Assembly (NCBI GenBank): GCA_037447605.1
Contig: CM074810.1
Coordinates: 2,080,880-2,144,879 of the forward strand
Source of the DNA: Zygnema circumcarinatum SAG 698-1b
Lineage: Eukaryota > Plantae > Zygnematophyceae
Direction: 5' to 3'
Length of the DNA: 64,000 bases
Shown piece by piece: positions 6,305 through 59,775 of the stretch; within the stretch, counting starts at the first letter, position 1, and each line of letters opens with the position of its first letter. The translations under genes and the position numbers were made by a program. A model generated the notes under the pieces. It saw nothing but the letters and a program-made list of their open reading frames with translations. It had not been told where the DNA came from and searched no databases.

Positions 6305-6661
6305 TGCGCCGCGACTGGCCCCTTGGTCCGGCTTTGGTTCGAGTTACGGCTGAGGACGTCCTTTCCTGGGCGGCATCGTACGACAGTGTACGGTACTGTA
6401 CGACGCCGTGCGGTATCGTACTAAGGTGTACGAAATGTACGGCATGCGGCCCGGCGGGGCGGTACATAGTAACATAGCGCTTCCCGTCCCGTGCCAGGCC
6501 GCGCCCTCCGCTCCCTCCTTCCGCCCCTCCCCGCTTCCCTCTCCGCCCCGCCCCGCCCCGCCCCTCCCCTTTCTTTTCTTCCCGGGCGGCGTGTAAGGTT
6601 AGGGCTCCGCCACGCCACGCCCACCCGCCCGCCCGCCCGCCAGGGCAAAGCGGCTGCCGCC

Positions 6662-7591
6662 ATGAACGACCTCTTCACGCGCTCGTGGACGCCGTTCAAG
6701 CAGCTCCCCAAAGAGACGCCAGAAGAGCAGGATGTGGAGATGGCCATGAGCCACAGCCAGGTTTTCGCCACGGAGAACATGGGGGGCTTTCAGCAGAAGG
6801 TGCGGGCCATCGAGCAGGACCTGAAGAACGCGGCCCAGCTCCTTTCTCGCCTGGAGGCGACGCACGAGAAGGCGAAGTCACTGGTGAAGGCCGCGGAAGT
6901 GAAGAGCGCGCAGCAGAGCATGCAGGGCGACATGCGGCTGATGACCGGCGTGGCCGCGCAGACGAAGAAGAAGCTCGAGGAGCTGCAGAGGGAGAACGCA
7001 GAGAACCGCGCGGTGGCCGGGTGCGAGGTGGGGTCCGCGGTGGAGCGATCGCGCAGCAACATCACGCGCGGGCTGGCGGGGAGGCTGCGCGAGACGGTGC
7101 AGCGCGCGGCGGCGCTGAGGCAGCGCGTGGACGCGGACGAGCGCGAGGCGCTGCGGCGGCGTGTGTTCGCGGTGACGGGCGCGGAGCCCGCTGAGGAGGA
7201 CGTGGTGGCCATGGCGGCCGCGGGCGAGGGCGAGAGCGAGCGCGTGTTCGAGCTCGCGGTGCGCCGCCAGGGAGGGCGCGGGGCCGCGGAGGCCGCGCTC
7301 GCGGAGGTGAGGGAGCGGAGCGCGGGCGCGCAGGAGGTCGCGCGGAGCCTGCTCGAACTGCACGACCTCTTCCTGCAGATGGCCACGCTCGTAGAGGCGC
7401 AGGGCGAGGCCGTGGACGACATTCAGGCCAACGTCGAGGGCGCGCTCGCCTACCAGACGAAGGCCACCGCCCACCTCGGCACCGCGGTGGCCATTCAGCG
7501 GAACACCAGGAAGTGGAAACTCTACGGGGCACTCATCGTCCTCGTCATCATTGCGATCCTTGCCCTGGTCATTTGGCTGGCTGTCAAATAA
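6662..7591 (+). CDS. SYP1: Plasma-membrane-type Qa-SNARE syntaxin (SYP1 family), 309 aa, single exon
   Basis: Uninterrupted ORF from the ATG at 6662. It has an N-peptide MNDLFTRSW, Habc helices (DVEMA; ERSRSNITRGLAGRLRETVQ), a SNARE motif (VRERSAGAQEVARSLLELHDLFLQMATLVEAQGEAVDDIQANV), QRNTRKW and a C-terminal TM anchor. Confidence 0.95.
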   Translation: MNDLFTRSWTPFKQLPKETPEEQDVEMAMSHSQVFATENMGGFQQKVRAIEQDLKNAAQLLSRLEATHEKAKSLVKAAEVKSAQQSMQGDMRLMTGVAAQTKKKLEELQRENAENRAVAGCEVGSAVERSRSNITRGLAGRLRETVQRAAALRQRVDADEREALRRRVFAVTGAEPAEEDVVAMAAAGEGESERVFELAVRRQGGRGAAEAALAEVRERSAGAQEVARSLLELHDLFLQMATLVEAQGEAVDDIQANVEGALAYQTKATAHLGTAVAIQRNTRKWKLYGALIVLVIIAILALVIWLAVK

Positions 7592-9292: not shown

Positions 9293-12200
9293 CTAGTACA
9301 AAAACTGCACCCCGAGCGCCGCAAACTGTAAGGCCAACAGCGCCGCGCCCAGCTTCTCCTTCTCCTCCTCCTTCTCGCGGAGGAGGAGGAGGAGGAGGGC
9401 GATGCACGAGCCCACGTCGCACGCTTCGACGAACACCTCCACCGCAAATGCCGCCGGCCGAATGAATGGCTGCAAGCCGACAGTTGGGACGGCTTAGATA
9501 TCGGTACAGACGGCAGTGATTCAATGACTATAAACTGAGGCAGATTTGTACAGGCCCACCTCATCCCCAACCCTTACTCCCTTACTCCTTCCCAATCATC
9601 CCTTCCTCCAAAACCTACCTTCCCAACATTTCGCCACTGACCGCTTCCGCCCAAATGTAGACATGGAACAGGCATAAGCGAGGAATATGGCAAGATAACC
9701 AGAAGGCAGCACATACAACAAACTCTGCCAGTACGTTTGCAACGTCTTTGCTGCGGACTGGTGGCTTGTACATACCCTCAGGGAGACGCACAAACAGAGA
9801 GTGGTTGCTCGTAACGAAAGAAGAAGCCCGACCTGCCAGAGTAGATGACTAGCCAGAGAGTTACTGGATGGCAAACACTTGAGTTCCAGTTTCAAAAGCA
9901 AAACCTCACACGGTTAGTCATGCCGCCGCGGCAGAGTTCGGTCAGTATAACGAGAGTGGTTCCTCATTGTCCCGGACAGCTTCCCAATCACACAATTCAG
10001 GATTTCTTTCCTTTCCTGCATGACCTGCACCAGCGAGCGAGCGAGCCTAAAACCCTAAAAACCTTGAAACCCCTAAAAACCCTACAAACTCTAAAAACCC
10101 TAGAAAGCCCCTTGCCGCACCTGTACGGCACTGTTCGCGGTCGGGTCGTACGCCGCGATGAGAGCGGCCGCCATCGCCCTCGCCAAGAGGCTCACGCTCA
10201 AGTAAAAGGCGCGCCACCCCCCCCGCCCTCCTGCAAGGACCTCCACCTTCGCCTCGCCATCGAGAACGCTCTCCTTCATTTCCTCCCCCCCTGCTTTCTC
10301 CTCCGCCAGGCCGAGAGTCCGCCATGCCTGCTGCTGGTCCAAGCCTGTCTCAGGCTCATCGTCCGCAGGGCCGATTTCGGTAGCTGCTCCTCTCTCACTC
10401 GGCTGCTCCTCCAGTAGCCCCAAAATCCTCCAATGCTCCGCCATGGCAGCAGAGCTTACAGGATACGGGGAGGCTACCGGTTTTGGAGATGGCTTCAGAC
10501 CCTCGTCCTCCTCCTCCAGTCCCAACAGCTTCCACTGCTCCGCCATGGAGCCACCGCTGCCGACCGGACCGCCGGCAGCAGGGTTCAGTTCGTCAGGGTT
10601 CAGACCCAGCAGCCTCAAGTGATCCGCCATGGACCCTGCTGCGGACGGAACGGAGATAACAAGCTTGGGCTTCTGCCGCATGCTTCGGTTCCGAGAGGAC
10701 GGAGCGGTCGGAGAGGAGGAAGCAGGAGGAGGAGGAGGTCGCAGGAGTTGGCCGCTTCTTGTGAGGAGGCCGGAATGGTCGCTGTCGGAGCACTCCATAT
10801 CCGAAGCGACTTCCTGTATGGTCTCCAAAATCGGCATCAGCGCCTTTAGGGACTTTAGGGCTAAGGGCGATTCCGCGGTCGAGGCAGGGCCGTCCGCAGT
10901 CTCCCGCGGTGAGCCCGAACCGCCACTAGATGCTGCGCTTGTCGTGCATCCTCCGTCGTCCGATGACGAGGGGGCAGCAGCAGCAAAAGGAGGGTGTGAG
11001 CGAAACATTCGGAATAGTCCTCCAAGTCCGAAGCTTTGGAGGGGCAAGCATGTGAAGAGGGCAGTTCTCCATGTGGTCCTCAATGCAGGGCTTTCGGGCG
11101 CCAAGGGATCGACTCCTCTGTAGTCTTCGAAAAGAACTCCGTACTTTGCAATCAAGTCCTTGCGCTGAAAGTTCCAGTAGGCTGTGTCCGCAGTTCTGCC
11201 AAATACAAATTTGCCCAAAAAGTCTTGCTTGCACTTTTCTTCCTCTACATAAATAGCCTTGTTATCGCCCTGCTCCAATTTGCGGTTCGGGGACACAGTC
11301 ACAATTTCATGCATTAGTGTAACGCAAGTAACAAGCGTATGCAGTATTCTTGAAAACGAAGAAACCCGATGCATTGACAAAGAAGGGGTGACCGAGAATG
11401 TAATGGGAAAGAAATCCCACAATAAGAAAAGATCCTGGAAATACTTTAAGAAGGAAAAACAAGAAAGAAAGTCGAAGAGATTTACCTGAAAGAGAAGCAT
11501 CCAAGTGAGAAAGACACAGAACGCGACAACACTGACAACACAGATGATGAGAGGAATAGCGATGGCCATGGCCGCTCCGCTGCCTGCAGCCAGCCACACA
11601 GGTCAGCAAATCTAAAACCTTTTAGACAGAAGCTAGACCTCGCAGGAAAACTGGAGATCAAAGAGGACAACAAGCCGGCCCCTTTGTCAAAAGATTCCGC
11701 TGTTCTCCCTCTGCAGCAGCATGGCGGGCAAAAAATGGGGCGGGGGGGAGGGCAAGCCCTGACTGCAGTGCTCGCCTGAACGGGCTATCAGTGCCTACAG
11801 TAAGCGCTAGCGCAAGATTCTGTCCCACATCTCATAGTGCTTAGTGCATAGTTTGCTTCAAAGAGAATTCTTAAATGGGAATGAATTCGTATGCCAAATG
11901 GTCATAGCATTTGCCTATCGGAGGCCGATGGATACTGTGGAAACCACGTGCCAGAGCTGCTTTTGGTAACTCTAACGAAAGTTGCTTACCACTACGTAGG
12001 AGTCGTACGGAAAGAAATATCAAAATTGGCACTGTGATGTAGGCAAACATGATTTGCAGTCGGGGGAATGCGAGAACGGTGGGGGCCTCCATTTGGGAAC
12101 GTCTGAGGACAAGGTGGAGGAGGCACTGGAGGAGACAGAGAATGACGAAACCGAGAGCGAAATAGAACAGGCATTGAATAGCCAGAATAAGGCTGCCATC

Positions 12201-15200
12201 AGGCCATCACGAGTTCCAATAGAGTGTTAATTGTCAACCTTACTCGAAATTCCACCTGTTATCAAAATGGTATGTTGTGTCAAAACATCCAAAGCTTTGA
12301 CGTCACTCCCTAAAACAATGAAAAAGGAAAATTGCCACAAGATGGAAAGAGAAAGGCAGACTTACCAAACAAGTAAGCAATATGTTTTGACTAAAATTAT
12401 TGCATAGGACTGCCAAGTTGGCAGAGGGCACAAGCAGCCTGCCTTAAGACAAAAGACTTACGCTGGATCACCGTCTCCAAGCTCCTCCTGAAGGTAGTTG
12501 CTGACATTATTACGGAAGTTAACCTGCCACAGAAGAACACCAATTAGGTCCAAAGCGTTCCCCCATACAGAATCAGACGAAGTACATGACATTTCCAAGA
12601 TTATCAAAATAGAGGCCGAGCGCTTACAGCTGATACTACCGCAGCGAGCTCTTGCATCGAGAAACTCTGAACTGACGTCGGTGTGGAGACAGAGGAAGAA
12701 GAGTTGGATGGCGGAGGTGATGGAGTAGACGACACTTTCGTTGCTCTGTGAATATCACAGAAAGCCGAGCAAAAACTCAGCTCCAAACACAAGCCCACAT
12801 CTGCCTCTTTGTATAAGCTCACTTCCAACACCTTCAACCCCATCAGTCTCATCACAAAACCCACAGCGCACGACCCACAATTGCAGTGATCCCAAGTCCC
12901 TGGGGTGTTCCAACCCTTGCTTTCAACCATCCCTGCGAGGAGGCAGGCGGGTTTACCGTATGCTCTGAGCAGAGGGAGGCGGCGAGGTCGCGAGCGCGAA
13001 GGGCGGCGGCGGCACGGCCGCGGCCCCCGTCGCGTTCCCGCCCGCGCCCGCGTACGCCCTCCGCCTCCTCCGCCCTTGATCGAACGGCGCGGGGAGGCGG
13101 AGGAGGGTCCACTGGAGCCGATCGACCGCGGTCTGGACCGCGGCGGGGAGGAGGACCGAGGCCGAGGAGAGGAAGGCCAGGGACTGCAGCCGGGAGATCG
13201 CGTGCTGCACACGGCGAATACAGGAGATTTACAGGACAGGACGCTTCAGAAAGACTTTCAGCTCGTTTCTGGGAACTTGAATCTTAGGGATCTTAGTGGC
13301 TTTTAGGAATTAAGATTTCTCTGGATTCGCGGACGTTATTTTGGCACACTACAGCCCTTTTGGGTACAGTGTTTAGAGGAAGGACGCACGAACCATCGCA
13401 TTGGAGGTGCCCTGGGTCGACCCCCCTTGCGGGATGCCGGCAGCTTGAATCAAAACCGGGCAGGCTATGGTCCCTGCTGCCAGGAGAGCACCTGCCGCAC
13501 TAAAGAATGTTGCCAAGGCCTCCATACTCCTCGATGGTTGATCTGCCAGAATGGTGCAATACCTACACCATTAGCATGGCGCACAAAAAAGTATCTTCTT
13601 CTGCAGGTTCATCTCCCTGAATGCACTCTGTTATTGTCTTCAGTTCAAACGATATTCAGCCATGCACCTAGGAGCGACAGGTTGTGATTGTGTACATTGC
13701 ATGATATGGAATGGCTTTGAAGCAAGCGTGGGATTATTGGCGAGGTCGAGAACTCCTCCCGCTGTAACTGTAACCTCAGCCATGGCTCCCGGCTGCAGCT
13801 CCAGGTCGAGTCCGAAAATTCCACCAAACTTAGCCTCACGTGGAATACCATATCTGCACACATGTACATGACTATTAGTTGTTATACGGTGGACATGATC
13901 ATGCTTTTGGATCCCCTACGCTTACAGCAAGGAGAACAAGGGTCATAGCAGCCTTGGCTATAATCATCTTGCACGAGGAATGGCTGCACTCACCCTAGCA
14001 ATGCACAATTCGTGAGATTTAAATCGTCCTTCGGATCAAAGCCGTAGACTGCCTCGCCGAAACTGAGTACAAGTGTGAACACCAAGCTGCTGGTTTGAGC
14101 TTTTTCGCCAGGCAGAAGGAGGAACTTTGGTGCTGGGGGTTGGTTGTCTGCCATGGCGACACAATGCATGGGTGAAGTCAGTGGAAAGCTTTCAGGCAGC
14201 CAGCCCAAGCAGGGAGCAGATCTGAAGCGCTCAAGCAAAAACAGCGCCAACCCAACAGAAAGGAATGTTGAAGATTATAATTCACTCACTCCAACACACC
14301 TGATGCAGTTAAGTCCAAAAACATTAACAAAATGGCGTCCATCTATGCACAAAAATGAGAATATAAAACCTGTGGAGACCCAGCAAGAACTTCCCACCAC
14401 ATGATGTTGGCATGTTTGTGATTGATTGGGAGATGCGGGCTCACCGACAAGGATTATGCTTTGTGTTAAAGTCAGCTGATTGGGAGAGCTGCTTGGAGCA
14501 TTGGCTGAAGGAGCTGCCAACGACACCGACACAAGCGTGGGCGTAACTTCTCCCTTAGCCATTTCAGTCGGCTGGACCTGCGGCACAACACAAGGGCTCC
14601 CCTGCCCCACTCACACGCTGCGCTGCAACAACCCCTGTGCATCTACCTGCTTTCAAGAAGGGGTCCAGCCCTTGAGCAGCAATCTTCGTGTTCCTATTTC
14701 TGCCCTTCGAAAGTCACAGTCGGCCCATTCCCTGTGTCTTTTGCATGAGGCTAAACCGCTAGCTTCTTTCTTGAAGACGGCAGCTAGTGAGCTCACCAGT
14801 AGGCTGTAGGTTGTGGCATTGGAGGCAGTGTTGTTATTGACCTACATGAACAATCGAAGGAGAGACGTCAGCACAATGAATTAAACGAATACATTCATCA
14901 CCTTCCACAACACAATCTTGGCAGAAATTTTCAGCGCGTAAAAGGTGCTATGACAAAGAAGCCGAAGGGACGAGGGAGGATCTTACCGCGGGTGTCGTGC
15001 AGCTCGGCGATTGAGCAGAATCTGAATTGAGAGTGAGCAACGAACCCCCCACAACGTGAATCATGCTCGGTGTGACGGGAGTGGTCGGCTTGTAGTTCAG
15101 ACAAAGAGTATACGAAATGGGAGAAATTTCATTCCAGTACTTCAACTTCGCTTCCTGTCCGCTTATGTTGACAACAATTGAAGGGACTTGTAAAGGAACA

Positions 15201-18200
15201 GCAACGGCTACTTCAGTGGAAGGATCTGCAGGGAATCAGAGACAGGAAGAGAGATTTCACAACAATTAAATCTTTTGTCCCTAAGAAACTAATTCAACAG
15301 ATCTCATGCGGTTGTGTAATTAATCGACAGGTGACTGCGGCAAGCACTTCATCGTCGCTTACAGCATAAGCATGAGATACCTGGCCATCCTTCCACACAT
15401 AGTCTCCGCCACTCACCAACTGTGAAGGCAAGCGTATGCAAGTCCGACAATAAAATTGTTTTCGAGAAAGTCATTAGTCGAAACAAATGGCTTCCATTTC
15501 CAAGTTCGTTGTAAGTCAGAGTCAAAGGTGACATCCTTCCAAAAACAGATTCTCCACAATCGGTTTTCGGTTCGGAGTCCAACTGTTAGGAAAATCCAGC
15601 AGACGATCAAGATCAATTCAGCTCTCAGTGTTAGCAGATGCGTCAGTTGAAAGGTTTTAGTGCCAACAAAGACGACAGCTACAACCTAAAACTTGGGCAA
15701 ACGTGTACGCAATTTTGAAAATCAAGGGAATGACATCATCTGCAAACACAAGAAACGGGAGAGTGCAGCTGGAAACCTGGCAAGTGAAAAAGCAGCCCCC
15801 CGAGCATTGCGCTGCAGCAAACGAGCCAGCAAGGCTCCATATAAATGTGACAGAGGAGTCCTTGATATAGTACTCATTGTCAACAAGAAGCCTGTAGGTT
15901 ACGGGTGCAATAGTAAGCAAGTCGGGCGTGTTGGTTAAGTTGACAGGCGAAGGTGGGGGTGGAGGGACGGAAAAAGGTGAAGGGGAAAGTAGAGGGGACG
16001 GAGACGAAAACAAAGGGGGTGGTAAAACTTGAGGAGATTGCGATGGTTGCACAGAAACAGGGGGAGGTGGAGGTGGCTGTAGGGAAGGAGAAGGAGCGGG
16101 AGACAGACGAGGAAACGGTGGAGGTGGCTCCAACGATGGAGATATCGGAAACAATGGTCGAAATGGAGAGGGTGATAGCGAGGGAGTAGGAATGGGAGTT
16201 GGTGGATGTGGCAAAAAGGGTGACGGCAAGGGAATAGGCGCGGTCAAGGGAGGGGAAGGAGCAGCTGCGGGAACAGGCGAGGGAATAGGGGCAGTTGACG
16301 GAGGAGGGTAAGACGGAAGTGCAGGGAAAGGAAAGAAGGGGAAGGGGGCGGTCGACAGAGGAGAAGGAGCAGATGCGGGGGAAGCGGAGGGGACGGGGAA
16401 GGACACAGGAGGGGAGGGAGGAGATACGGGCGAAGGAGTGTGGACGGGGGCGGTTGAGGCAGGAGAAGGACCAACTGCGGGCGAAGGGGAGAGGACGGGG
16501 GCTGTCGATGGAGGAGAAGGAGCGGACGAGGGTGAAGGGAAGGGGACGGGAAAGGAGACAGGAGGGGACGGAGGAGACGAGGGCGAAGGGGAGGGGACGG
16601 AGGTGGTCGGGGAAGGAGAAGGAGAGAATGCGGGCGAAGGGGAGGGGATGGAGGTGGTCGGGGAAGGAGAAGGAGAGAATGCGGGCGAAGGGGAGGGGAT
16701 GGAGGTGGTCGGGGAAGGAGAAGGAGAGAATGCGGGCGAAGGGGAGAGGACGGGGGGGGTCGAGGGAGGAGAAGGTGCGGATGCGGGAAATGGCGAGGGG
16801 ATGGATGGGGTCGGGGAGGGAGAAGAAGAGAATGCGGGCAAAGGTGGGGAGACGGGGGCGGTCGAGGGAGGGGAAGGAGCAGATGCAGGCGAAGGCGAGG
16901 GGACGGGGGGGGTCGTGGGAAGAGAAGGAGAGGATGCAGGCGAGGGCGATGGGACGGGGAAGAAGACAGGAGGGAAAGGAGGGGTAGGAGGAGATGCAGG
17001 CGAAGGCAAGGGGACGGGAAGGAGAAGGAGCAGATCGGGGGACAGGAGAAGAAGTAGCAGATGCAGGCGAAGGGGAGGGTACAGAGGGGGTCAAGGGAGG
17101 AGAAGTAGCGGATGCGGGCGAGGGCGAGGGGACCGGGAAGAAAAATGGAGGGAAAGGAGGGGTAGGAGGAGATGCAGGCGAAGGGGAGGGGACAGGGGGG
17201 GTCGAGGGAGGAGAAGGAGAGGATGCAGGCGAAGGGGAGGGGATGGAGGTGGTCGGGGAAGGAGAAGGAGAGAATGCAGGCGAAGGGGAGGGGATGGAGG
17301 TGGTCGGGGAAGGAGAAGGAGAGAATGCGGGCGAAGGGGAGGGGATGGAGGTGGTCGGGGAAGGAGAAGGAGAGAATGCAGGCGAAGGGGAGGGGATGGA
17401 GGTGGTCGGGGAAGGAGAAGGAGAGAATGCAGGCGAAGGGGAGGGGACTGGGAAGAAGTCAGGAGGGAAAGGAGGGGTAGGAGGTGATGCAGGCGAAGGG
17501 GAGGGTACAGAGGGGGTCAAGGGAGGAGAAGGAGCGGATGCGGGCGAGGGTGAGGGGACGGGGAAGAAAAAAGGAGGGAAAGGAGGGGTAGGAGGAGATG
17601 CAGGCGAACGGGAGGGGACAGGGGGGGTCGAGGGAGGAGAAGTAGCAGATGCAGGCGAAGGGGAGGGTACAGAGGGGGTCAAGGGAGGAGAAGGAGCGGA
17701 TGCGGGCGAGGGCGAGGGGACGGGGAAGAAAAAAGGAGGGAAAGGAGGGGTAGGAGGAGATGCAGGCGAAGGGGAGGGGACAGGGGGGGTCGGGGAAGGA
17801 GAAGGTGCAGATGCAGGCGAAGGAGAGGGTACAGAGTGGGTCAAGGGAGGAGAAGGAGAGGATGCAGGCGAAGGGGAGGGGACATGGGGGGTCGAGGGAG
17901 GAGAAGGAGAGGATGCAGGCGAAGGGGAGGGGACTGGGAAGAAGTCAGGAGGGAAAGGAGGGGTAGGAGGAGATGCAGGCGAAGGGGAGGGGACGGGGGG
18001 GGTCGAGGGAGGAGAAGGAGAGGATGCAGGCGAGGGCGATGGGACGGGCAAGAAGACAGGAGGGAAAGAAGGGGTAGGAGGAGATGCAGGCGAAGGCAAG
18101 GGGACGGGGGGGGTCGGGGAAGGAGAAGGAGCAGATGCAGGCGAAGGGGAGGGTACAGAGGGGGTCAAGGGAGGAGAAGGAGCGGATGCGGGCGATGGGG

Positions 18201-21200
18201 GTGGAACGGGGGTGGTCGAGGGTGGAGAAGTAGCGAATGCGGGCGAAGGCGAGGGGATGGGGAAGAAGACAGGAGGGGAAGGAGGGGAAGGAGGAGATGC
18301 AGGCGAAGGGGAGGGGACGGGGGAGGTCGAGTGAGGAAAAGGAGTGGATGCGGGCGAAGGCGAGGGAATGGGAAAGAAAGCAGGAGGGGAAGGAGGGGAA
18401 GGAGGAGGTGCGGGCGATGTGGAGGGGATGGAGACGGTCGGGGATGGAGAAGGAGAGAATGCGGGCGAAGGGAAGGGGATGGGGACGGTCGAGGGAGGGG
18501 AAGAAGCGGACGCGGGCGACGGCGAGGGGACCAGGAAGAAGGCAGGAGGGGAAGGAGGGGAAGGAGGAGATGCGGGAGAAGTGGAGGGGACAGGGGCGGT
18601 CAAGGAAGGGGAAGGAGCAGATGCAGGCGAAGGCGAGGGGAGGGGGGGGCTCGAGAGAGGAGAAGGAGCGGATGGGGGCGAAGGGGAGGGGAAGGGGGCG
18701 GTCGGGGAAGTGGAAGGAGCAGATGCAGGCGATGGGGTGGGGACGGGGGGGGTCGAGGGTGGATGAGTGGAAGCGGGCGAAAGGGAGGGAACGAGGGGGA
18801 TCCAGGAAGGAACAGAGGCGGATGCGGGCGAAGGCGAGGGCATGGGGAAGAAGACAGGAGGGGAAGGAGTGGATTCTTGCAAAGGGGAGGAGACGGGGGT
18901 GGTCGAGGGGGTCGAGGCAGGAGAAGGTTCGGATGCGGGCGAAGGCGAGGGGACGGGGAAGAAGACAGGAGGGGATGGAAGAGATGCGGGCGAAGGGGAG
19001 TGGACGGGGGCGGTCAAGGGAGGAGAAGTTACAGATGCGGGTGAAGGGAAGGGGACGGGGGCGGGCGATGGGGGAGAAGAAGCAGATCCGGGTGACGGGG
19101 AGGGGACGGGAGCTATTGAAGAAGGGGAGGGTGGAGGTGTGGGCAACGATGTGGGTGCAGGTGAGGTGATTGGAGCGATGTTAGGAGAAGGTTGAAGGTG
19201 TAGCGAAGGTGCGGGTGAAGGTGATGGCATAGGAGCGATGTCGGGAAGGGAAGGAGGGGATGCGTCTGAAGGTGTTGGTGAAGGTGAGGGGATAGGAGCG
19301 ATATCGATAGGGGAATGAGGGGCTGCGGGTAAATGTGTGGTTGAATGTGAGGGGACAGGAGCGATTGCAGAAGGGGGGGGACGAGATGGAGGTGACGATG
19401 GAGGTGAAGGTGAGGAGATAGAAGCAATGAAGGGAGGGTAAGGAGGAGGAGATGCCGGTAAAGGTGTGGTTGAAGGTGAGGAATTAGGAGAGATGTCGGG
19501 AGGGGAAGGAGGAGGTGTGGGTGAAGGTGAAGGGTTAGGAGAGACGACAGGTGGAAAAGCAGGAGGTGCGGGTGAAGTTGAGGGAATTGGAGCGATGTAA
19601 TGATTGGATGGAGGAGGAGATGCTTGTGAAGGCGTGTGTAACGGTGATGGGATAGGAGCGATGTCGGGAGGGGAAGCAGGGGATGCGTATGAAGCTATGG
19701 GTGAAGGTGATGGAATACGAGGGATGAAAAGAGGGGGAGGAGGAGGTGCGGATGTAGTTGTCCGTGAAGGTGAGGGGACAGGATCGTTTAAAGAAGGTGA
19801 GGGGTCAGATGTGGGTGGCGATGTGAGTGAAGGAGAGGGGATAGGAGCGATGCCGGGAGGGGAAGGAGAGGATGCGTCTGAAGGTGAGGGTGAAGGTGAG
19901 GCGATAGGAGTGATGTCGAGAGGCGAAGGTGGTGGTGCAGGGGAGGGTTTGGTTGAAGATGAGGGAATAGGAGCGATGTCGGGAGGGGAAGGAGGAGGTA
20001 TGGGTGCAGTTGTTGGTGAACGTGACGGGATAGGAGGTATGACAGGTGGGGACGGAGGAGGTGCGGGTGAAGGTGAGGGGATAAAAGCAATATCTAGAGG
20101 CGAAGGAGGAGTTGAGGGTGAAGGTGTGGGTAACGGTGATGGAATACGAGCGATGTTGGGAGGGTAAGAAGGAGGAGATAGGGGTGAAGGTGTGGGTGAA
20201 GGGGAGGGTATAGGAGCGATTACAGGAAGGAAAGGAGGAAATGTGGGTGAAGGTGTAAGTGATGGTGAGGGGATAGGAGCGATGGCAACAGTGTAAGGAG
20301 GAGATGCGGGTGAAGGTGTGGGTGAAGGTGAGGGGACAGTAGGGGAAGGAGGAGATGCGGGTGAAGGTGTGGGTTTAGGTGAGGAGATAGGAGCAATGAC
20401 AAGAGGGAACGGACGCGCTGGAGAAATGGGCGAAGGTGGTGGTAGAGAAGGGGAAGGACGATGGGATGGAGGGGGTGAAGGAGAGGGGGGAAGAAGTCCA
20501 GGTGAAGGTGACTGTATGGGAGGGGGAAGAGGAGGGGAAGCAGGGGTTGAAGTGGACGGGGGAGGAGATGTGTGTGAAGGGAAAGGTACACGAGGGGGAG
20601 GAGGAAGTGAAAGGGAACGGGGAGGAGATGCGGGCGAAGGTGACGGTGCAGAATGGGGAGGAGGGAAAGGTGGGGGTGATGAGGAAGGTGGAGGAGATGC
20701 GGGTGATGGTGATGGCCCAGTAGGAGATGTAGTTGAAGGCGACGGTACAGGAGGGGAAAGAGAAGATGTGGGGTAAGGTGATAATTCAGGGGCAGCTGCA
20801 AGTGAAGGTGATGGCGCAAGTGATGGAGGGGGGGAAGGAGGAGGGGAAGGCGGAGAGGAAGATGGAGGGAAAGGGGCCGGGGAAGTTGGAAGGGATGAAG
20901 GTGTTGAAGCTGAAGGCATGGAAGATGCGGCTGAAGGTGACAAAGCAAGAGAGGGAGAAGGAGATGCAGGAGAAGCTGCCGGTGAAGGTGGTGGCACAGG
21001 AGGGAACGGGGGAAAGAAAGGAGGGGCGAAAGGCGGGAATGCGATTGAAGGTGATAGCGCAGGAGAAGGCAGAGGGTGGTAAGGAGAAGATGAAGGAGGA
21101 GGGGAAGGCGGAGAGTAAAAAACAGGGGAAGGAAGAGATGCGGGCAAAGGTAATGGCGCAGAAGGGGAAGGAGGATGGGACAGCGAAGAGGCGAGTGAAG

Positions 21201-22989
21201 GCAATGGAGAAGGAGGAAAAGGAGGAGGGAATGGGAGAAATACAAATGGCGCAGGAGGGGAAGGGAAGGGGGAAAGAAGAGAGGGAGGGGAAGATGAGGG
21301 TGAAGGTGAAGGTGATGCCGCAGGAGGGAAAGAAGAGGAAAGAGGGGGAGGAGTAGGAGAGTAGGGAAAAGATTCGGGTGAAGGCGATGGCGCAGGAGAG
21401 AAAGGAAGAAAGGGAGGGAGGGACGGAGAATTAGCATGTGAAGGTGACGCTACAGGAGGGAATAAAGAAGTGAAAGGAGGAGAGGATGGGGGAAAAGGAT
21501 TTGAGGATAGAGGGTGAGCAAGAGGGGTCAGAGAAGTTACGGATGAAGGTGATGGCACAGGAGAGGGTGAAAGCAGAGGAGGAGGAGGGAAACGAGGAGT
21601 TGAGGGCGAAGGTAATGCAGCAGGAGGGGAAAGAGGAGGGGAAGTAGTAGGAGGAGGTGAAGGAGAAGTTTTAGGTGAAGGTGATGGCTGAGGAGCAGTC
21701 GCAGGAGGAAAAAGAGGTGATGTGGGAAGGGGGGAAGCGGAATTTCTGGGTGAAGGTAAAGACGCAGGGGCAGTCACAGGAATGGGAGGATAAGCTGTGA
21801 TTGATGGCGACAGACGAGGGGTAACTGCAGCTGGAGAAGGAAAGCTTGTGGCTAAAGGTGACGGAGTAGGGGAAGTCGCAGGAGGAAAAGTTGACTGTGC
21901 TGGTATGCGGGCAGCCCCGGGCTTGACGGGTGAAGGGGAGGAGGGCGAGGCAGCGGCAGGGACAGGACGGTAGAGGTTGGGTGCCTGTGATGGCGCAGTG
22001 GCACTAACAGGAGAGAGAGGAGGAGATGCGGGTATAGGCGATGGCACAAGCGCAATTGGAGGATTGGAAGAAGGAGATGTGGGTAAAGGCAACGGTACAG
22101 GGACATGGGTAGGAGGTGAAGCTGCTGGTAGAGGAAAATTAAGAGGAGGAGGAGGAGATGATAGGGACGGAAGGAATGCAGTGGTTGGATTAGAGGTGGA
22201 AAGAGCGGGAGGGGACGAGAGGGATGCGAGATCACGTGTGTTTGGTCCATAGGAGAGTTTTTGCAGTAAAGTTCGCGAAGCCCCCCGCGAGCTTCCCTCC
22301 GACGAGGCCGCGGCGATTCTGAACGTTCTCGCGGAGGAGGAGGCTTTAGAGGGCGACTGGGCCGCTGTAAAACAGAGCAGGTCCTGTAAGCTGACAGGTT
22401 CAAAGAAGACGCTGATTCCGCATTGTGTGCACGGGTATTTCCTTCTGTGCAGCAGCAAGTTGTGTTGAGGGCGGGCAATAATGAAGGCCTAATGTTTAAC
22501 TGTCAGAGCTTCGTGATTGCACTGCTTGCAAAATTGCTTTCATAAGGAATTGAGTTCGTATGGCACTGTTACCGCGAAAGGAATTCGAAGATTTGCAGAA
22601 TTTTGTGCTTAAAGATGGTTTGGAAGGAGAAAGGATGAAGTTAAAGTCCAAAACAGTACCCAGAATTTGGTGCAGGGTCGTAACAACAACTGGGGTGCAA
22701 GCACGTACCTCTTTCTGCCTTGCCATACGCAGAACCGCTTGAAATAAAAAAAAGGAGGATCCAAACAACGCAAAGAAGGTCTACAGAGAAAGCAGCTCCA
22801 CCTGAAATGCCCCACAGCAAGCGCACAACGAGAGTCAACGGGAAGGGAATGAGCTAAGCGCTGATGCTTCAATCGATGCGCGCGAGCCTGCGCGGCGCCT
22901 ATCGTGCGCCTCTACATAATTGTTCCCGAGAACCTGCTCACGCCCTTGTTTTGCTAATTTCAGGCGCTGAACATACTGTAGCTGAGCAT
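9293..22989 (-). CDS. Giant (~3,280 aa) membrane protein: signal peptide, Ser/Pro extensin-like stalk, Ig-like beta domains and multi-pass TM domain; one +1 frameshift near 17.0 kb
   Basis: 18 GT-AG exons with consistent phases: 22989-22977, 22801-22709, 22364-15777, 15582-15417, 15225-14987, 14841-14797, 14577-14445, 14147-13994, 13853-13696, 13542-13394, 13204-12957, 12745-12640, 12523-12462, 12192-11990, 11583-11486, 11269-10121, 9832-9776, 9469-9293. The N-terminus [31 protein letters not shown] is signal-peptide-like. The C-terminal ~1,050 aa resemble, from memory, the uncharacterised Arabidopsis AT3G48200 family ([30 protein letters not shown]...LP...[25 protein letters not shown]). Confidence 0.85.
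15900..22250 (-). repeat. Coding tandem-repeat array of Ser/Pro modules within the giant exon
   Basis: A 51-nt unit encoding [17 protein letters not shown] occurs about 4 times at 17230-17440 and again at 16580-16740. 60-nt units encoding [20 protein letters not shown] recur between 17100 and 18100, and IAPIPSPSP modules recur at 19100-20400. The + strand is strongly purine-rich. Confidence 0.9.
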
Positions 22990-51795: not shown

Positions 51796-52246
51796 TCTGT
51801 GGGTGTTGTCAGCATCTCGTAGTGTAGGCGAAAGGAGGCAGTGCAAGTGCAGGGTTGTCTGAGCATGCGAATCATGCGAGCGTACTTGCTTATGCGAATA
51901 ATGCTGGCGTCCATGCCAGATAGGGATTCTCGCCCGTGAAAAGTCGTACGGCGGAAATGGGGCCCGAATGAACAGGCTCCCTGGAATTGAGCTCAACCTA
52001 CTTGGCAAAAATTAGAATCTATACGTGTGACTGAACATATTGGGACTTTGAACTTTTTTAAATACTTTTTGCCTTCTCAAATTGAAAAAGTTGACTATTA
52101 TCAAACAAAGTCTAGCCGCGGCTCCTCAGGTCTGCAGGTTTCTGCTTCTCACTGCCTCGTGTTTCTCAGGCTTCTCTCGCGCCGCGCCTCAAGGCCAAGG
52201 CTTCGCCGCTCTCGTAAGCTCGCGGCTTCGCCGCGGGCCGCCGCCA

Positions 52247-53444
52247 GGCTCATGCCTCGCCTTGTGCCTCGTGCCTGCGTGCCTGCGCCTGCGTGCCTGC
52301 GCCTGCGTGCCTGCGCCTGCGTGCCTCATGCCTGCGTGCCTGCGCCTTGTGCCTCGTGCCTGCGTGCCTGCGCCTTGTGCCTCGTGCCTGCGTGCCTGCG
52401 TGCCTGCGCCTTGTGCCTCGTGCCTGCGTGCCTGCGTGCCTGCGTGCCTGCGCCTGCGTGCCTGCGTGCCTGCGTGCCTGCGCCTTGTGCCTCGTGCCTG
52501 CGTGCCTCATGCCTGCGTGCCTGCGTGCCTGCGCCTGCGTGCCTGCGCCTGCGTGCCTCATGCCTGCGTGCCTGCGTGCCTCATGCCTGCGTGCCTGCGC
52601 CTGCGTGCCTGCGTGCCTCATGCCTGCGTGCCTGCGCCTTGTGCCTCGTGCCTGCGTGCCTCATGCCTGCGTGCCTGCGTGCCTCATGCCTGCGTGCCTG
52701 CGTGCCTGCGCCTTGTGCCTCGTGCCTGCGTGCCTGCGCCTTGTGCCTCGTGCCTGCGTGCCTGCGTGCCTCATGCCTGCGTGCCTGCGCCTTGTGCCTC
52801 GTGCCTGCGTGCCTGCGTGCCTGCGTGCCTGCGCCTTGTGCCTCGTGCCTGCGTGCCTCATGCCTGCGTGCCTGCGTGCCTCATGCCTGCGTGCCTGCGC
52901 CTGCGTGCCTCATGCCTGCGTGCCTGCGCCTTGTGCCTCGTGCCTGCGTGCCTGCGTGCCTGCGTGCCTCATGCCTGCGTGCCTGCGTGCCTGCGTGCCT
53001 CATGCCTGCGTGCCTGCGCCTGCGTGCCTGCGTGCCTCATGCCTGCGTGCCTGCGTGCCTGCGTGCCTCGTGCCTGCGTGCCTGCGTGCCTGCGTGCCTC
53101 ATGCCTGCGTGCCTGCGTGCCTGCGTGCCTGCGCCTTGTGCCTCGTGCCTCGCCTTGTGCCTCGTGCCTCGCCTTGTGCCTCGTGCCTCGCCTTGTGCCT
53201 CGTGCCTCGCCTCGTGCCTCGTGCCTCGCCTCGTGCCTCATGCCTCGTGCCTCGTGCTTTGTGCCTCGCCTCGTGCCTCGTGCCTCATGCCTCGCCTTGT
53301 GCCTGCGTGCCTGCGCCTGCGTGCCTGCGTGCCTCATGCCTGCGTGCCTCGTGCCTGCGCCTGCGTGCCTGCGCCTGCGTGCCTGCGTGCCTCATGCCTC
53401 GCCTCATGCCTCGCCTCGTGCCTCGTGCCTCGCCTTGTGCCTCG
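52247..53444. repeat. ~1.2-kb GC-rich satellite of 6-8-nt monomers sharing a GCCT core
   Basis: Mosaic of GCCTGCGT, GCCTCAT, GCCTCGT, GCCTTGT and GCCTGC monomers, with a recurring higher-order block GCCTGC-GCCTTGT-GCCTCGT-GCCTGCGT. Confidence 0.95.
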
Positions 53445-54941
53445 TGTGACAGAAGAGAACACATTCAAGCTTGAAGCACAATACACATAATCTCACAAGA
53501 TCAACACATAACTCATAAACACTTCTTTATTTCATCTGAGGCCTCATTACAAATCACTCCATCCTTTCTTCTGTCTTCTCTCTTCTCTCTTCTCTCTTCT
53601 CTCTTCTCTCTTCTCTCTTCTCTCTTCTCTCTTCTCTCTTCTCTCTTCTCTCTTCTCTCTTCTCTCTTCTCTCTTCTCTCTTCTCTCTTCTCTCTTCTCT
53701 CTTCTCTCTTCTCTCTTCTCTCTTCTCTCTTCTCTCTTCTCTCTTCTCTCTTCTCTCTTCTCTCTTCTCTCTTCTCTCTTCTCTCTTCTCTCTTCTCTCT
53801 TCTCTCTTCTCTCTTCTCTCTTCTCTCTTCTCTCTTCTCTCTTCTCTCTTCTCTCTTCTCTCTTCTCTCTTCTCTCTTCTCTCTTCTCTCTTCTCTCTTC
53901 TCTCTTCTCTCTTCTCTCTTCTCTCTTCTCTCTTCTCTCTTCTCTCTTCTCTCTTCTCTCTTCTCTCTTCTCTCTTCTCTCTTCTCTCTTCTCTCTTCTC
54001 TCTTCTCTCTTCTCTCTTCTCTCTTCTCTCTTCTCTCTTCTCTCTTCTCTCTTCTCTCTTCTCTCTTCTCTCTTCTCTCTTCTCTCTTCTCTCTTCTCTC
54101 TTCTCTCTTCTCTCTTCTCTCTTCTCTCTTCTCTCTTCTCTCTTCTCTCTTCTCTCTTCTCTCTTCTCTCTTCTCTCTTCTCTCTTCTCTCTTCTCTCTT
54201 CTCTCTTCTCTCTTCTCTCTTCTCTCTTCTCTCTTCTCTCTTCTCTCTTCTCTCTTCTCTCTTCTCTCTTCTCTCTTCTCTCTTCTCTCTTCTCTCTTCT
54301 CTCTTCTCTCTTCTCTCTTCTCTCTTCTCTCTTCTCTCTTCTCTCTTCTCTCTTCTCTCTTCTCTCTTCTCTCTTCTCTCTTCTCTCTTCTCTCTTCTCT
54401 CTTCTCTCTTCTCTCTTCTCTCTTCTCTCTTCTCTCTTCTCTTCCTGTATTCTATATCTCAAGGCAGCACTTCTTTTCTACTCAATATCTAAGTTTCCGT
54501 GACCTCAATCCCCTCCTTCCCCGAAAGCACCATACATTTATACGCTACTACCGACAGCTTCTCCTCCTACTTGATATTCTTTCTTCAAGCATGCACCTTC
54601 TTGAACTCTCTCACACGCGCGGTCTCTTTCGCCCGTACACATGTCCGTACCATCGTCTGTACAACCGTCCGTACAACCCGCAGCATCATCATCTATCACA
54701 ATTCCCCCTCTTGATGCAAGGGTTGGACAACTCATGCATTCATCAATCTTACAAGTTTGCAACATCTACCAATCATTGGTCCTGTCCCTACATTGGTCAT
54801 CATATCAGCTGCCTGCTTTGTCGTATGAACATACTTCAGCTCAATCTCCTTCTTGGTCACTAACTCACGAATGAAATGGTACTTCAAATCTATATGCTTT
54901 GTCCTCTTGTGATAAACTGGGTTCTTAACAATGCAATGCAA
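53445..54941 (-). mobile_element. 3' end of a Ty1/Copia retrotransposon: RNase H C-terminus, PPT and 3' LTR (53445-54700)
   Basis: The minus strand encodes IVKNPVYHKRTKHIDLKYHFIRELVTKKEIELKYVHTTKQAADMMT. A polypurine tract AAGAGGGGGAAT is followed directly by TGTGATAGA (54700), and the matching inverted end TCTGTCACA is at 53453-53445. Confidence 0.88.
53574..54441. repeat. Perfect heptanucleotide microsatellite (TCTTCTC)x124 inside the Copia LTR
   Basis: 868 bp = 124 x 7 nt, with no interruptions seen. Confidence 0.95.
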
Positions 54942-57900: not shown

Positions 57901-59775
57901 GCTCGGCTATGCAATTGGCCAAAGCAGTTAAGGAGGGTTGCACCTTGTTCATGGTGCATGTCATGGCAGCCACTGAGGATGTGCATGACGAAGATCAGGA
58001 ATGGCAAATCACATCCACGGATGTGCTCTCGGCCGTTCCACCCAAAATCCAACCTTTGTTGGATGAGTTCAGGGATGTCTTCCCTGATGACCTTCCAAGG
58101 GGTTGCCCCCATCGAGAGGGGTGGGGCACACAATCCGTCTTGAGCCTGAGCAAAAGCCGCCTTGGCGGCCGATCTATCGGTTAAGTCCGAAGGAAACCGA
58201 GGAAATGCGTAAGCAGTTGGCAACTTTACGTGAAAAGGGCTGGATAGAACCCAGTCAGAGCCCCTTTGGGGCGCCCATCTTGTTCGTTGGGAAGAAAGAT
58301 GGCTCGTTGAGGATGTGCATTGATTATCGCGCACTCAACAAGATCACCGTAAAGAACCGTTTTGCTTTACCACGTATTGATGATCTGTTGGATTGTCTCC
58401 ACGGCGCCAAAGTGTTTACTTCACTCAATCTATCAGGGGTACCGTCAATCCGCGTAGGGTTTGAAAACCAATGTGCCGGAACCGCGATTATGGACGCCGA
58501 TCGTCATCCCAAGTCTGCAGGTGTTACCCTCAATGGCTGCTGCTGACAACTGCAGCTGTAATGAGCGGATGTCATCGGCATGAGCAAGTTTGTTTTGGTT
58601 TACCTCGATGATATCCTTGTCTTCAGTAAGACGGAGGAGGAACATCTTGAACACGTTCGGAAAGTGTTTGAGACCCTGAGGAAACACCAATTTTATGCCA
58701 AGAGGAAGAAGTGTCACTTCATGCAACGCGAGTTGCTTTATCTTGGGCATATCCTCAATGATCAGGGTCTTCGGCCTGATCCTGCCAAAGTTTCAGCGGT
58801 AGAAACTTGGGCGCCACCGACTGACTTGCATCAGTTGCGATCGTTCTTGGGTTTTGCGAATTATTTTCGTAAGTTCATCCAAGGGTTTAGTAAGTTGGTT
58901 ACTCCTTTGACTAATTTGACACGTTCCGGTGTCCCCATTGTCTGGACCCCTGAATGCCAGGAAGCATTCGAGGGTGTCCGCCATGCACTTGTTACCGCAC
59001 CCACTCTCCGTTTAGCGGACCCGTCCAAGCCTTATGAAGTGGTTTGTGATGCTTCGGGATTCGCCTTGGGTGCCATCTTGTTTCGTGATGGCCAACCTTT
59101 TGGCGATGAAAGTCGCGAAATGAATCCCGGGCCGAAATTTAACTATTCGCAGAATGCACGTAGAACCGCTGTAGCTGTCCACTGGCGGTTACGCGTGCTA
59201 TTTAGAGGGGCTTAAAGCGGCCACGTACCGGGTCACCGACCACGTACTGCCGACGCCTTCACCCAAACAGTATCTCGCTCAGCGGCAAGTGCACGCCGTC
59301 CGAAGTTCTCCAGCGGTTTGATCGCCGCTGGGTTTATCGCCCGACGCACAATGTAAGCGCACTTTAATCGGCGTACCGATCTTGCCCTCGATGGTGCGCC
59401 GCCGACTCGAGTGTTGGTGGAACGAGATGACAGAGGTGAGGGGCCGGCCAACCCCGAGTCTCCGTCTCCAGTATGCTTTGTCATAGATCCCTCCACCAGT
59501 GACGTAGTCGACCCTCCTGCTCTCTCTAATCTCAGACAGATGATTCAGGAGGGGTATACTGGTGATCCTTTGTTCCTGGATGGCCAAGGTAATGGCTATA
59601 AGGACAAAGTGGTGTCTAAGGACGGATTCTGGTACCACGGCCAGCAGTTGGTCGTGCCCAAGGCCGGGACTGTACGGCAGCTCATTCTGGGTGAGCTACA
59701 TGATCCTCCGTACCGAGGTCACATGGGAGTTGCCAAAACCCTTGAGGCACTGCTCCGAGAGTTCAGTGTTGTACG
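54943..59775 (+). mobile_element. Degenerate Ty3/Gypsy retrotransposon, truncated at the 3' end and inserted into the Copia element
   Basis: Begins TGTAGCG at the point where the Copia RNase H is cut. It has gag remnants (DGLKPH), a protease tail (DVILGSAWL), RT ([45 protein letters not shown]; VLVYLDDILVFS), RNase H (VVCDASGFALGAIL) and an integrase Zn region (ELHDPPYRGHMGVAKT). There are multiple frameshifts and a 10-N gap at 57568-57577. Confidence 0.92.

Follow-up and report, generated by a model that had tools for sequence, protein, structure and literature searches.

The gene described here lies on the minus strand of a 64,000-nucleotide stretch of the genome of Zygnema circumcarinatum SAG 698-1b (assembly GCA_037447605.1, contig CM074810.1, positions 2,080,880 to 2,144,879; hereafter the window, to whose numbering all coordinates refer). 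A multi-exon, intron-containing eukaryotic gene was found at positions 9293–22989, where the plus-strand reading had an extreme skew of G over C. The predicted product combines a very long Ser/Pro-rich rod of the hydroxyproline-rich glycoprotein (HRGP) type with a multi-pass membrane module. The gene is real and transcribed. Contigs from four publicly available RNA runs of this organism (X1–X4) were placed on positions 10200–16199, with a contig depth of 30–180. Spliced contigs from all four runs shared 13 introns between 15776 and 11270, and all 13 joints were GT..AG on the minus strand after small permitted shifts of the cut. Exons 4–16 together with the 3′ 1,314 nt (approximately 440 codons) of the Ser/Pro exon formed an open frame of 1,418 codons. 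Approximately 1,060 of these codons were non-repeat, and for them chance was excluded as the cause of the open frame.

An independent reconstruction gave 18 exons with canonical splice sites throughout, which agreed with the number proposed in an earlier first-pass annotation of this DNA. Exons 1, 2 and 18 were placed from the sequence only. The exons are given in the order of transcription, with the transmembrane helices abbreviated as TM.

Exon 1 (predicted), 22977–22989, minus strand: ATG plus 10 nt, donor GTATGT, joining exon 2 in phase
Exon 2 (predicted), 22709–22801, minus strand: core of the signal peptide, acceptor TTTCAG, donor GTACGT
Exon 3, 15777–22364 (6,588 nt), minus strand: rod and about 57 aa of the ectodomain, from the open reading frame (ORF) and composition; 3′ end fixed by RNA
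Exon 4, 15582–15417, minus strand: ectodomain, introns confirmed by RNA
Exon 5, 15225–14987, minus strand: ectodomain, introns confirmed by RNA
Exon 6, 14841–14797, minus strand: ectodomain, introns confirmed by RNA
Exon 7, 14577–14445, minus strand: ectodomain, introns confirmed by RNA
Exon 8, 14147–13994, minus strand: ectodomain, introns confirmed by RNA
Exon 9, 13853–13696, minus strand: ectodomain, introns confirmed by RNA
Exon 10, 13394–13542, minus strand: first TM helix (TM1), hydropathy 1.9; RNA
Exon 11, 12957–13204, minus strand: LQSLAFL..VLLP..LQW segment, Arg5 run and Ala/Pro low-complexity tract; RNA
Exon 12, 12745–12628, minus strand: with exons 13–15, a Ser/Pro-rich linker and three strong TM helices; RNA
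Exon 13, 12523–12462, minus strand: part of the same unit; RNA
Exon 14, 12192–11990, minus strand: part of the same unit; RNA
Exon 15, 11583–11486, minus strand: part of the same unit; RNA
Exon 16, 10121–11269, minus strand: structured stretch, helix, acidic disordered loop and TM helix; RNA
Exon 17, 9619–9832, minus strand: two hydrophobic helices, in phase, GT-AG
Exon 18 (predicted), 9293–9492, minus strand: two hydrophobic segments, of which the second lies at the extreme C-terminus; stop codon 9295–9293

The rod and the first approximately 57 aa of the globular ectodomain were encoded by the same exon (exon 3), whose donor at 15777 was fixed by RNA contigs extending into the rod. Hence, the Pro-rich exon and the Ig-like and membrane exons do not belong to separate genes, the outcome that the first-pass annotation had named as a refutation of its proposal. 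The spliced contigs and the shared exon placed the rod, ectodomain and membrane parts in one transcription unit in the order proposed there, whereas the signal peptide at the head of that order is a prediction. Exon 2 carried a hydrophobic core with small residues at −3/−1 and ended in phase 1, matching the acceptor at 22364. The predicted exons 1 and 2 were the only arrangement found with a Met-initiated signal peptide in phase for this acceptor. One contig of X1 joined 22240–22264 to 15895 and omitted the entire 6.3-kb rod. It was rejected as a stalk-less isoform: the joint had no GT-AG and a microhomology of 3 nt (ACA), was out of frame and occurred in one contig. This contig was probably a template switch of the reverse transcriptase; nevertheless, it places both ends of exon 3 in one RNA.

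At the 3′ end, the donor of exon 16 was 10121|GTGCGG, and retention of intron 16 would lead to a stop at 10100–10102. The contigs that extended beyond the covered stretch at 10200 protruded by 81 nt in X4 and by 106 nt in X2 and X3; these are the break points of a k = 31 graph expected for splicing at 10121|9832 beside retention of intron 16. A repeated 30-mer that could cause a contig break there was not found in the colinear sequence. The exon 16–17 junction thus has good indirect support. Moreover, the next gene downstream is convergent on the plus strand; hence, no other minus-strand gene claims exons 17 and 18. Several further signals were seen in this part of the gene. Intron 16 was apparently kept in part of the RNA (seen at 10100–10120), which would cost the last four or five helices, and positions 10049–10106 of this intron held a 9-mer array (AAAACCCTA, 6.4 copies) whose unit is telomere-repeat-like. 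A minor alternative GC-AG donor (12442–12461), 19 nt into intron 13, would break the frame; its contig depth was 5–12 versus 92–110 at the main junction. A contig of X3 and X4 touched two GC-rich low-complexity spots at 10721–10738 and 13086–13106 (18–21 nt each) with long unmatched ends, and it probably came from another GGAGG-rich locus and not from a back-splice.

The largest element of the gene was an open frame of 2,192 codons (22458–15880), which read almost wholly Ser/Pro-rich. The rod itself, excluding a break in its reading frame that is treated below, measured 2,137 aa, in accordance with the approximately 2,100 aa of the first-pass annotation. It contained 38.5% Pro, 24.5% Ser, 8.8% Ala and 6.2% Thr, that is, 78% for the four residues together, with 322 SP, 85 SPSP, 58 AP and 49 TP. 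A content of Pro, Ala, Ser and Thr above 50%, clustered SP/AP/TP and a predicted signal peptide characterize (SP)n glycomodules of the HRGP and arabinogalactan protein (AGP) type, and all three were found here. Classical extensins carry Ser-Pro(3–5) blocks and Tyr cross-linking motifs (YXY, VYK). The rod had 11 SPPP, 1 SPPPP and 0 YXY, with 0.6% Tyr and 0.3% Lys. Judged by composition and motifs, the rod is an (SP)n HRGP/AGP-like module and not the extensin stalk that the first-pass annotation had named. It resembles the AGP and (SP)n HRGP glycomodules in its content of the four residues, its dense SP, AP and TP and its SPSP runs, whereas it differs from classical AGPs in having a multi-pass membrane domain instead of a GPI-type architecture.

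The Ser/Pro reading had 0 stops in 1,780 codons, compared with 18 and 15 stops in the other frames. In 500 block shuffles that preserved the composition, the mean was 16.9 stops and the minimum was 7, although C/T-rich DNA of this kind has few stop codons whatever the frame. This difference indicates that the frame has been held open by selection. The N-terminal third of the rod was degenerate. Two tandem arrays were delimited with Tandem Repeats Finder (TRF), the second also from the translation:

19205–20407, minus strand: tandem array of 63 nt (21 aa) in the rod
16337–19110, minus strand: nested tandem array of 51/111/162/324 nt in the rod

In MST3 from Chlamydomonas reinhardtii, 429 residues measure 133 nm, which is 0.31 nm per residue (PMC11015965). 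At the same rise, the present rod could reach about 0.6–0.65 µm when fully extended.

The C-terminal part after the rod comprised 1,168 aa when the exons were spliced computationally. It begins with an ectodomain of approximately 350 aa, in which 7 Cys and 6 N-x-S/T sequons were counted. Four of the 7 Cys lay in a C-x3-C-x3-C-x9-C cluster. Exon 8 gave a Pfam match to Big_12 that was below threshold (E = 0.12, 13 bits versus a cutoff of 27), and the single-sequence AlphaFold 2 (AF2) model of exon 5 was all-beta at low confidence, with a predicted local distance difference test (pLDDT) score of 55. These data are consistent with the beta-sandwich segments that the first-pass annotation had proposed. 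In adhesion G-protein-coupled receptors and PKD1, a GPS/GAIN autoproteolysis motif with Cys pairs and HL|T directly precedes the first helix. The 60 aa before TM1 contained one Cys and no HL[ST] on inspection, and no GPS or GAIN match was obtained from Pfam.

The membrane module was predicted to comprise 9–11 helices according to hydropathy and AF2. TM1 is followed by the LQSLAFL..VLLP..LQW segment, three strong helices, the loop of exon 16 and four to five hydrophobic segments. A total of 8–9 further hydrophobic helices follow the LQSLAFL..VLLP..LQW segment, instead of the approximately seven of the first-pass annotation. This segment was moderately hydrophobic (hydropathy 1.65) and is possibly a second TM helix; an Arg5 run and approximately 100 aa of Ser/Pro/Ala low complexity come after it. 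The TM helices of exons 12–15 had hydropathies of 2.2–3.1. Exon 16 started with a stretch of approximately 65 aa of alternating hydrophobic residues, which had a beta-prone look but showed no strands in AF2 (single-sequence model, pLDDT 42). A 30-residue helix, a disordered acidic loop of approximately 260 aa and a TM helix followed. In total, the loop that interrupts the module measured approximately 350 aa and was mostly disordered and acidic. Within it (approximately 10290–10640), there were four spaced copies of [SA]MA[ED][HQ]W[RK][LI]LGL..EE. Three of the four copies had a W-x-x-L core after an acidic residue, which is LIR/AIM-like, and two of the four matched [DE]xxxL[LI]. By their sequence, the four copies could be partner-binding or sorting motifs. 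The membrane topology used below is a proposed one; the positive-inside rule alone is insufficient to fix the orientation.

All searches for families, homologues and structures were carried out piecewise on exons or ORFs, which reduced their sensitivity. In Pfam, 27 exon/ORF pieces at E ≤ 1–10 returned only noise (DUF5005 at E = 0.1, B12D, Psg1) besides the Big_12 match. The first-pass annotation had pointed to the PF06011 fold of the TRP-like FLC and Pkd2 proteins, but this kinship found no support: PF06011, TRP_N (PF14558), PKD_channel and Polycystin_dom had no match at E ≤ 10 on any exon piece searched singly, that is, neither PF06011 over the helices nor the ML-like TRP_N in the ectodomain, and the exon with the LQSLAFL segment had unrelated language-model neighbours. 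Polycystin and PKD2-like profiles likewise gave no match on the pieces; a PDB sequence search with exon 16 was blank, and the single-exon models remained at pLDDT 42–55, which is too low for a fold search. In the ESM Atlas, the neighbours of three pieces did not rise above chance level (MRS2/CorA-like at 0.79 and the rest below 0.6). A phmmer search of 1.84 billion representatives with the stop-free stretch of exons 15–16 gave a single match, to a bacterial protein (P0001), and none to plant proteins. P0001 has nine tandem Ig-like repeats of approximately 113 aa and an RTX-like tail, and these repeats inflated the score. The repeat profile of P0001 performed no better on the spliced protein than on shuffles (rank 4 of 1,000), which marks it as a chance match. 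Word-indexed searches that started from the N-terminal end of the rod, from the first segment of the ectodomain and from the TM3–TM4 exon were blank, with a length filter that drops full-length relatives of single exons. Furthermore, tblastn with the C-terminal model revealed no paralogue in the window.

The 18 exons total 10,030 nt, which is 3n + 1. They do not join in correct phase into a protein of approximately 3,280 aa, as the first-pass annotation had stated, because the frame is broken within the rod. The break falls in an aberrant repeat unit:

17010–17062, minus strand: frame break, period-27/28 local duplication (TRF)

The Ser/Pro reading ran in one frame from 22364 to approximately 17022 and in the next from approximately 17018 to 15777, and alignment showed that the unit at the break carries 16 nt more than its sister units. 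Splicing was excluded as a remedy. The sense strand contained no AG between 17449 and 16503; hence, an intron cannot remove the break. Contigs of 932 nt from three runs began at 15777 and would reach approximately 16708 if colinear, the colinearity beyond 16199 being presumed; with a depth like that of the exons, they appeared to run through the AGs at 16266, 16476 and 16503. The frame-restoring GT..AG pairs amounted to one-third, as chance predicts, and the frame-restoring donors within approximately 2.4 kb upstream of the break were non-consensus only (GTTCGC, GTCCCC). Six sampled 31-mers of 16975–17064 occurred in none of 24 listed runs, which include two RNA runs expressing the gene and several DNA runs. 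This blank look-up is compatible with an assembly error and with repeats absent from the indexed contigs.

Whether the break is real bears directly on the product. If it is real in the strain, the gene would yield a secreted Ser/Pro glycoprotein of approximately 2,196 aa with an out-of-frame tail of approximately 380 aa rich in Cys, Phe and Leu, the ectodomain and membrane module would be untranslated, and the transcript would be a likely target of nonsense-mediated decay (NMD). The gene would then be a null allele or pseudogene of very recent origin. The surplus of 16 nt is not a single-base slip in a homopolymer, the stop at 15880–15882 lies upstream of 15 exon junctions, and the interval 17449–16503 has no usable acceptor, all of which speak for this possibility. 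However, the transcript was abundant in the four runs, which is unexpected under NMD. Downstream of the break, 357 Ser/Pro codons and 1,168 further codons over 15 exons had 0 stops, and such a stretch of 1,525 codons is not that of an old pseudogene. With the abundant transcript, these intact codons are the strongest argument for either an artefact or a lesion that is very young or confined to the strain. Moreover, aberrant units are an error that assemblies typically make inside long tandem arrays, and the sampled 31-mers spanning the site were found in no listed run. The frame break was therefore judged probably to be a repeat-assembly or strain artefact, with the ORF intact in vivo; a real break is an appreciable but clearly smaller chance, and its specific form, the truncated secreted glycoprotein, is unlikely. 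In practical terms, frame breaks can occur in the giant Pro-rich repeat exons of this assembly, and its gene models need read-level checks.

The preferred explanation, to which we give slightly better than an even chance as a whole, is that one transcribed 18-exon gene makes a full-length protein of approximately 3,340 aa, a wall- or mucilage-tether glycoprotein on an orphan membrane module. A cleavable signal peptide would lead into the (Ser-Pro)n HRGP module of approximately 2,100 residues, which, if hydroxylated and glycosylated as in other HRGPs, would form a polyproline-II rod. The beta-rich, Cys-containing and presumably N-glycosylated ectodomain of approximately 350 aa would lie beneath the rod, followed by the 9–11-helix module and its loop of approximately 350 aa with the four W-x-x-L/LLGL motifs. 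Its most likely role is that of a tether between the plasma membrane and the matrix of the wall or mucilage, with the rod as the matrix-embedded part and the membrane module as the anchor, possibly also as a signalling or transport part. Several observations weigh against this explanation. The assembled sequence has a broken reading frame that splicing is unable to restore: the ORF from the predicted ATG ends at 15880–15882 after 2,196 codons, of which the last approximately 380 are out of frame. The blank 31-mer look-up is weak as an answer to this, given that the repeats may be missing from the indexed contigs and that the DNA runs were blank too. Furthermore, the piecewise searches gave no homologue, family or fold for the membrane module, and the proposed function derives from the architecture.

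The nature of the membrane part was considered in three further ways. An orthology of the C-terminal approximately 1,170 aa with the land-plant AT3G48200 family, with the HRGP rod gained N-terminally, goes back to a resemblance named in the first-pass annotation. AT3G48200 is listed in the literature as an uncharacterised transmembrane protein whose C-terminal ‘omega’ region is hydrophobic (PMC6726743; PMC9664069), and the present protein likewise ends in a hydrophobic segment. However, the phmmer search with exons 15–16 retrieved no plant protein among the 1.84 billion representatives and the word searches were blank, and this orthology is considered doubtful. A second proposal holds that the module is a TRP/polycystin-like cation channel, either of the FLC/Pkd2 type (PF06011) or of the MST3-like PKD2 type, that is gated by tension of the rod. 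The helix pattern permits it: TM1, a weak helix, a loop of approximately 120 aa, three helices, a long loop and a helix/short helix/helix unit with 43 aa between its outer two helices could, in one topology, represent an extra N-terminal helix, S1–S4, a cytosolic insertion, S5, a re-entrant loop and S6. Positive charges appear to follow the putative S2 and S6. Moreover, MST3 and seven other Chlamydomonas proteins pair poly-proline regions with PKD2-like domains, and PKD1 places its N-terminus outside via additional helices (PMC11015965). However, none of the channel profiles matched at E ≤ 10, no PDB match was obtained and the Atlas neighbours were unrelated, although these piecewise tests were insensitive. 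The loop in the place of the TOP domain is low-complexity Ser/Pro/Ala and not a folded sheet, an insertion of 350 aa in the S4–S5 linker would be unusual, and the putative pore loop is without an acidic motif resembling a selectivity filter. A channel of either known type is thus improbable. A further reading combines the rod with a channel in a streptophyte alga in another manner: a new 9–11-helix family of unrelated fold would conduct ions, or recruit partners via the four W-x-x-L/LLGL motifs, when the rod is pulled by the wall or mucilage, a mechanosensing design convergent with MST3–PKD2 and yeast Wsc1. It is given an equally small chance, well below that of a tether on an orphan membrane module.

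A few other features were seen in the window. The convergent neighbour of the rod gene is a single-exon, tail-anchored, syntaxin-like ORF of 366 aa at 6491–7591 on the plus strand, and a GC-rich stretch (7000–7499, 76% GC) lies inside it. Two long simple arrays with ACLRACVP-type and EERREKR-type repeats occupy 52027–53490 and 53554–54462, respectively. A reverse-transcriptase-like ORF is located at 58580–59215, and short runs of N occur at approximately 4700 and 57300.

Single-pass proteins with wall-embedded, Ser/Thr/Pro-rich, O-glycosylated stalks of about 100–300 aa include Wsc1 and Mid2 in yeast and the PERK kinases and class I formins in plants. The present protein shares with them a glycosylated stalk, as predicted, and a membrane anchor, and they provide a functional model for wall–membrane coupling. 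It differs in its stalk of approximately 2,100 aa, in its anchor of 9–11 helices and in having no known cytosolic domain such as a kinase or FH2. With fungal FLC and S. pombe Pkd2, it shares a predicted signal peptide, a beta-rich luminal or extracellular domain and many helices; however, an HRGP rod is absent from these proteins, and they begin with an ML-like domain where the present protein has three Ig-sized segments.

The closest precedent comes from Chlamydomonas reinhardtii, in which MST3 (Mstax) was described in 2024 as a long hydroxyproline-rich polyproline-II rod on a multi-pass membrane domain (PMC11015965). SIP completes the PKD2-like domain of MST3, by which the mastigoneme is anchored to PKD2, and seven further Chlamydomonas proteins have large extracellular regions, all but one poly-proline-rich, together with PKD2-like domains (PMC11015965). 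The gene analysed here appears to encode a multi-pass membrane module that serves as the anchor of an HRGP rod, a design with precedent in MST3. Both proteins belong to the green lineage, both have an N-terminal extracellular hydroxyproline-rich rod of hundreds of nanometres that is continuous with a multi-pass domain, and both have a large non-membrane intracellular region, as far as the proposed topology and hydroxylation of the present protein hold. MST3 has a recognisable PKD2-like domain without S1, whereas no PKD/TRP signal was detected in the present protein. Furthermore, MST3 is ciliary and has a C-terminal tail of 1,600 aa, whereas the intracellular mass of the present protein would be an internal loop. 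The beta-rich ectodomain of 350 aa, the extra first helix and the streptophyte host also set the latter apart. The first-pass annotation had known of no description of this architecture in streptophytes. The design itself had already been described in MST3, although MST3 and the related proteins are chlorophyte (PMC11015965).

The finding concerns how walled green cells sense strain in the wall or mucilage; the plant proteins known as candidates for this role cross the membrane once and carry short Pro-rich stalks. With a rod that could bridge a cell wall or reach beyond it, set on a multi-pass module, the present protein would be a direct and testable candidate for a transmitter of force from the wall to the membrane in the lineage from which land plants arose. 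The parallel with MST3 would point to an HRGP rod plus a multi-pass anchor as a recurrent design of the green lineage.

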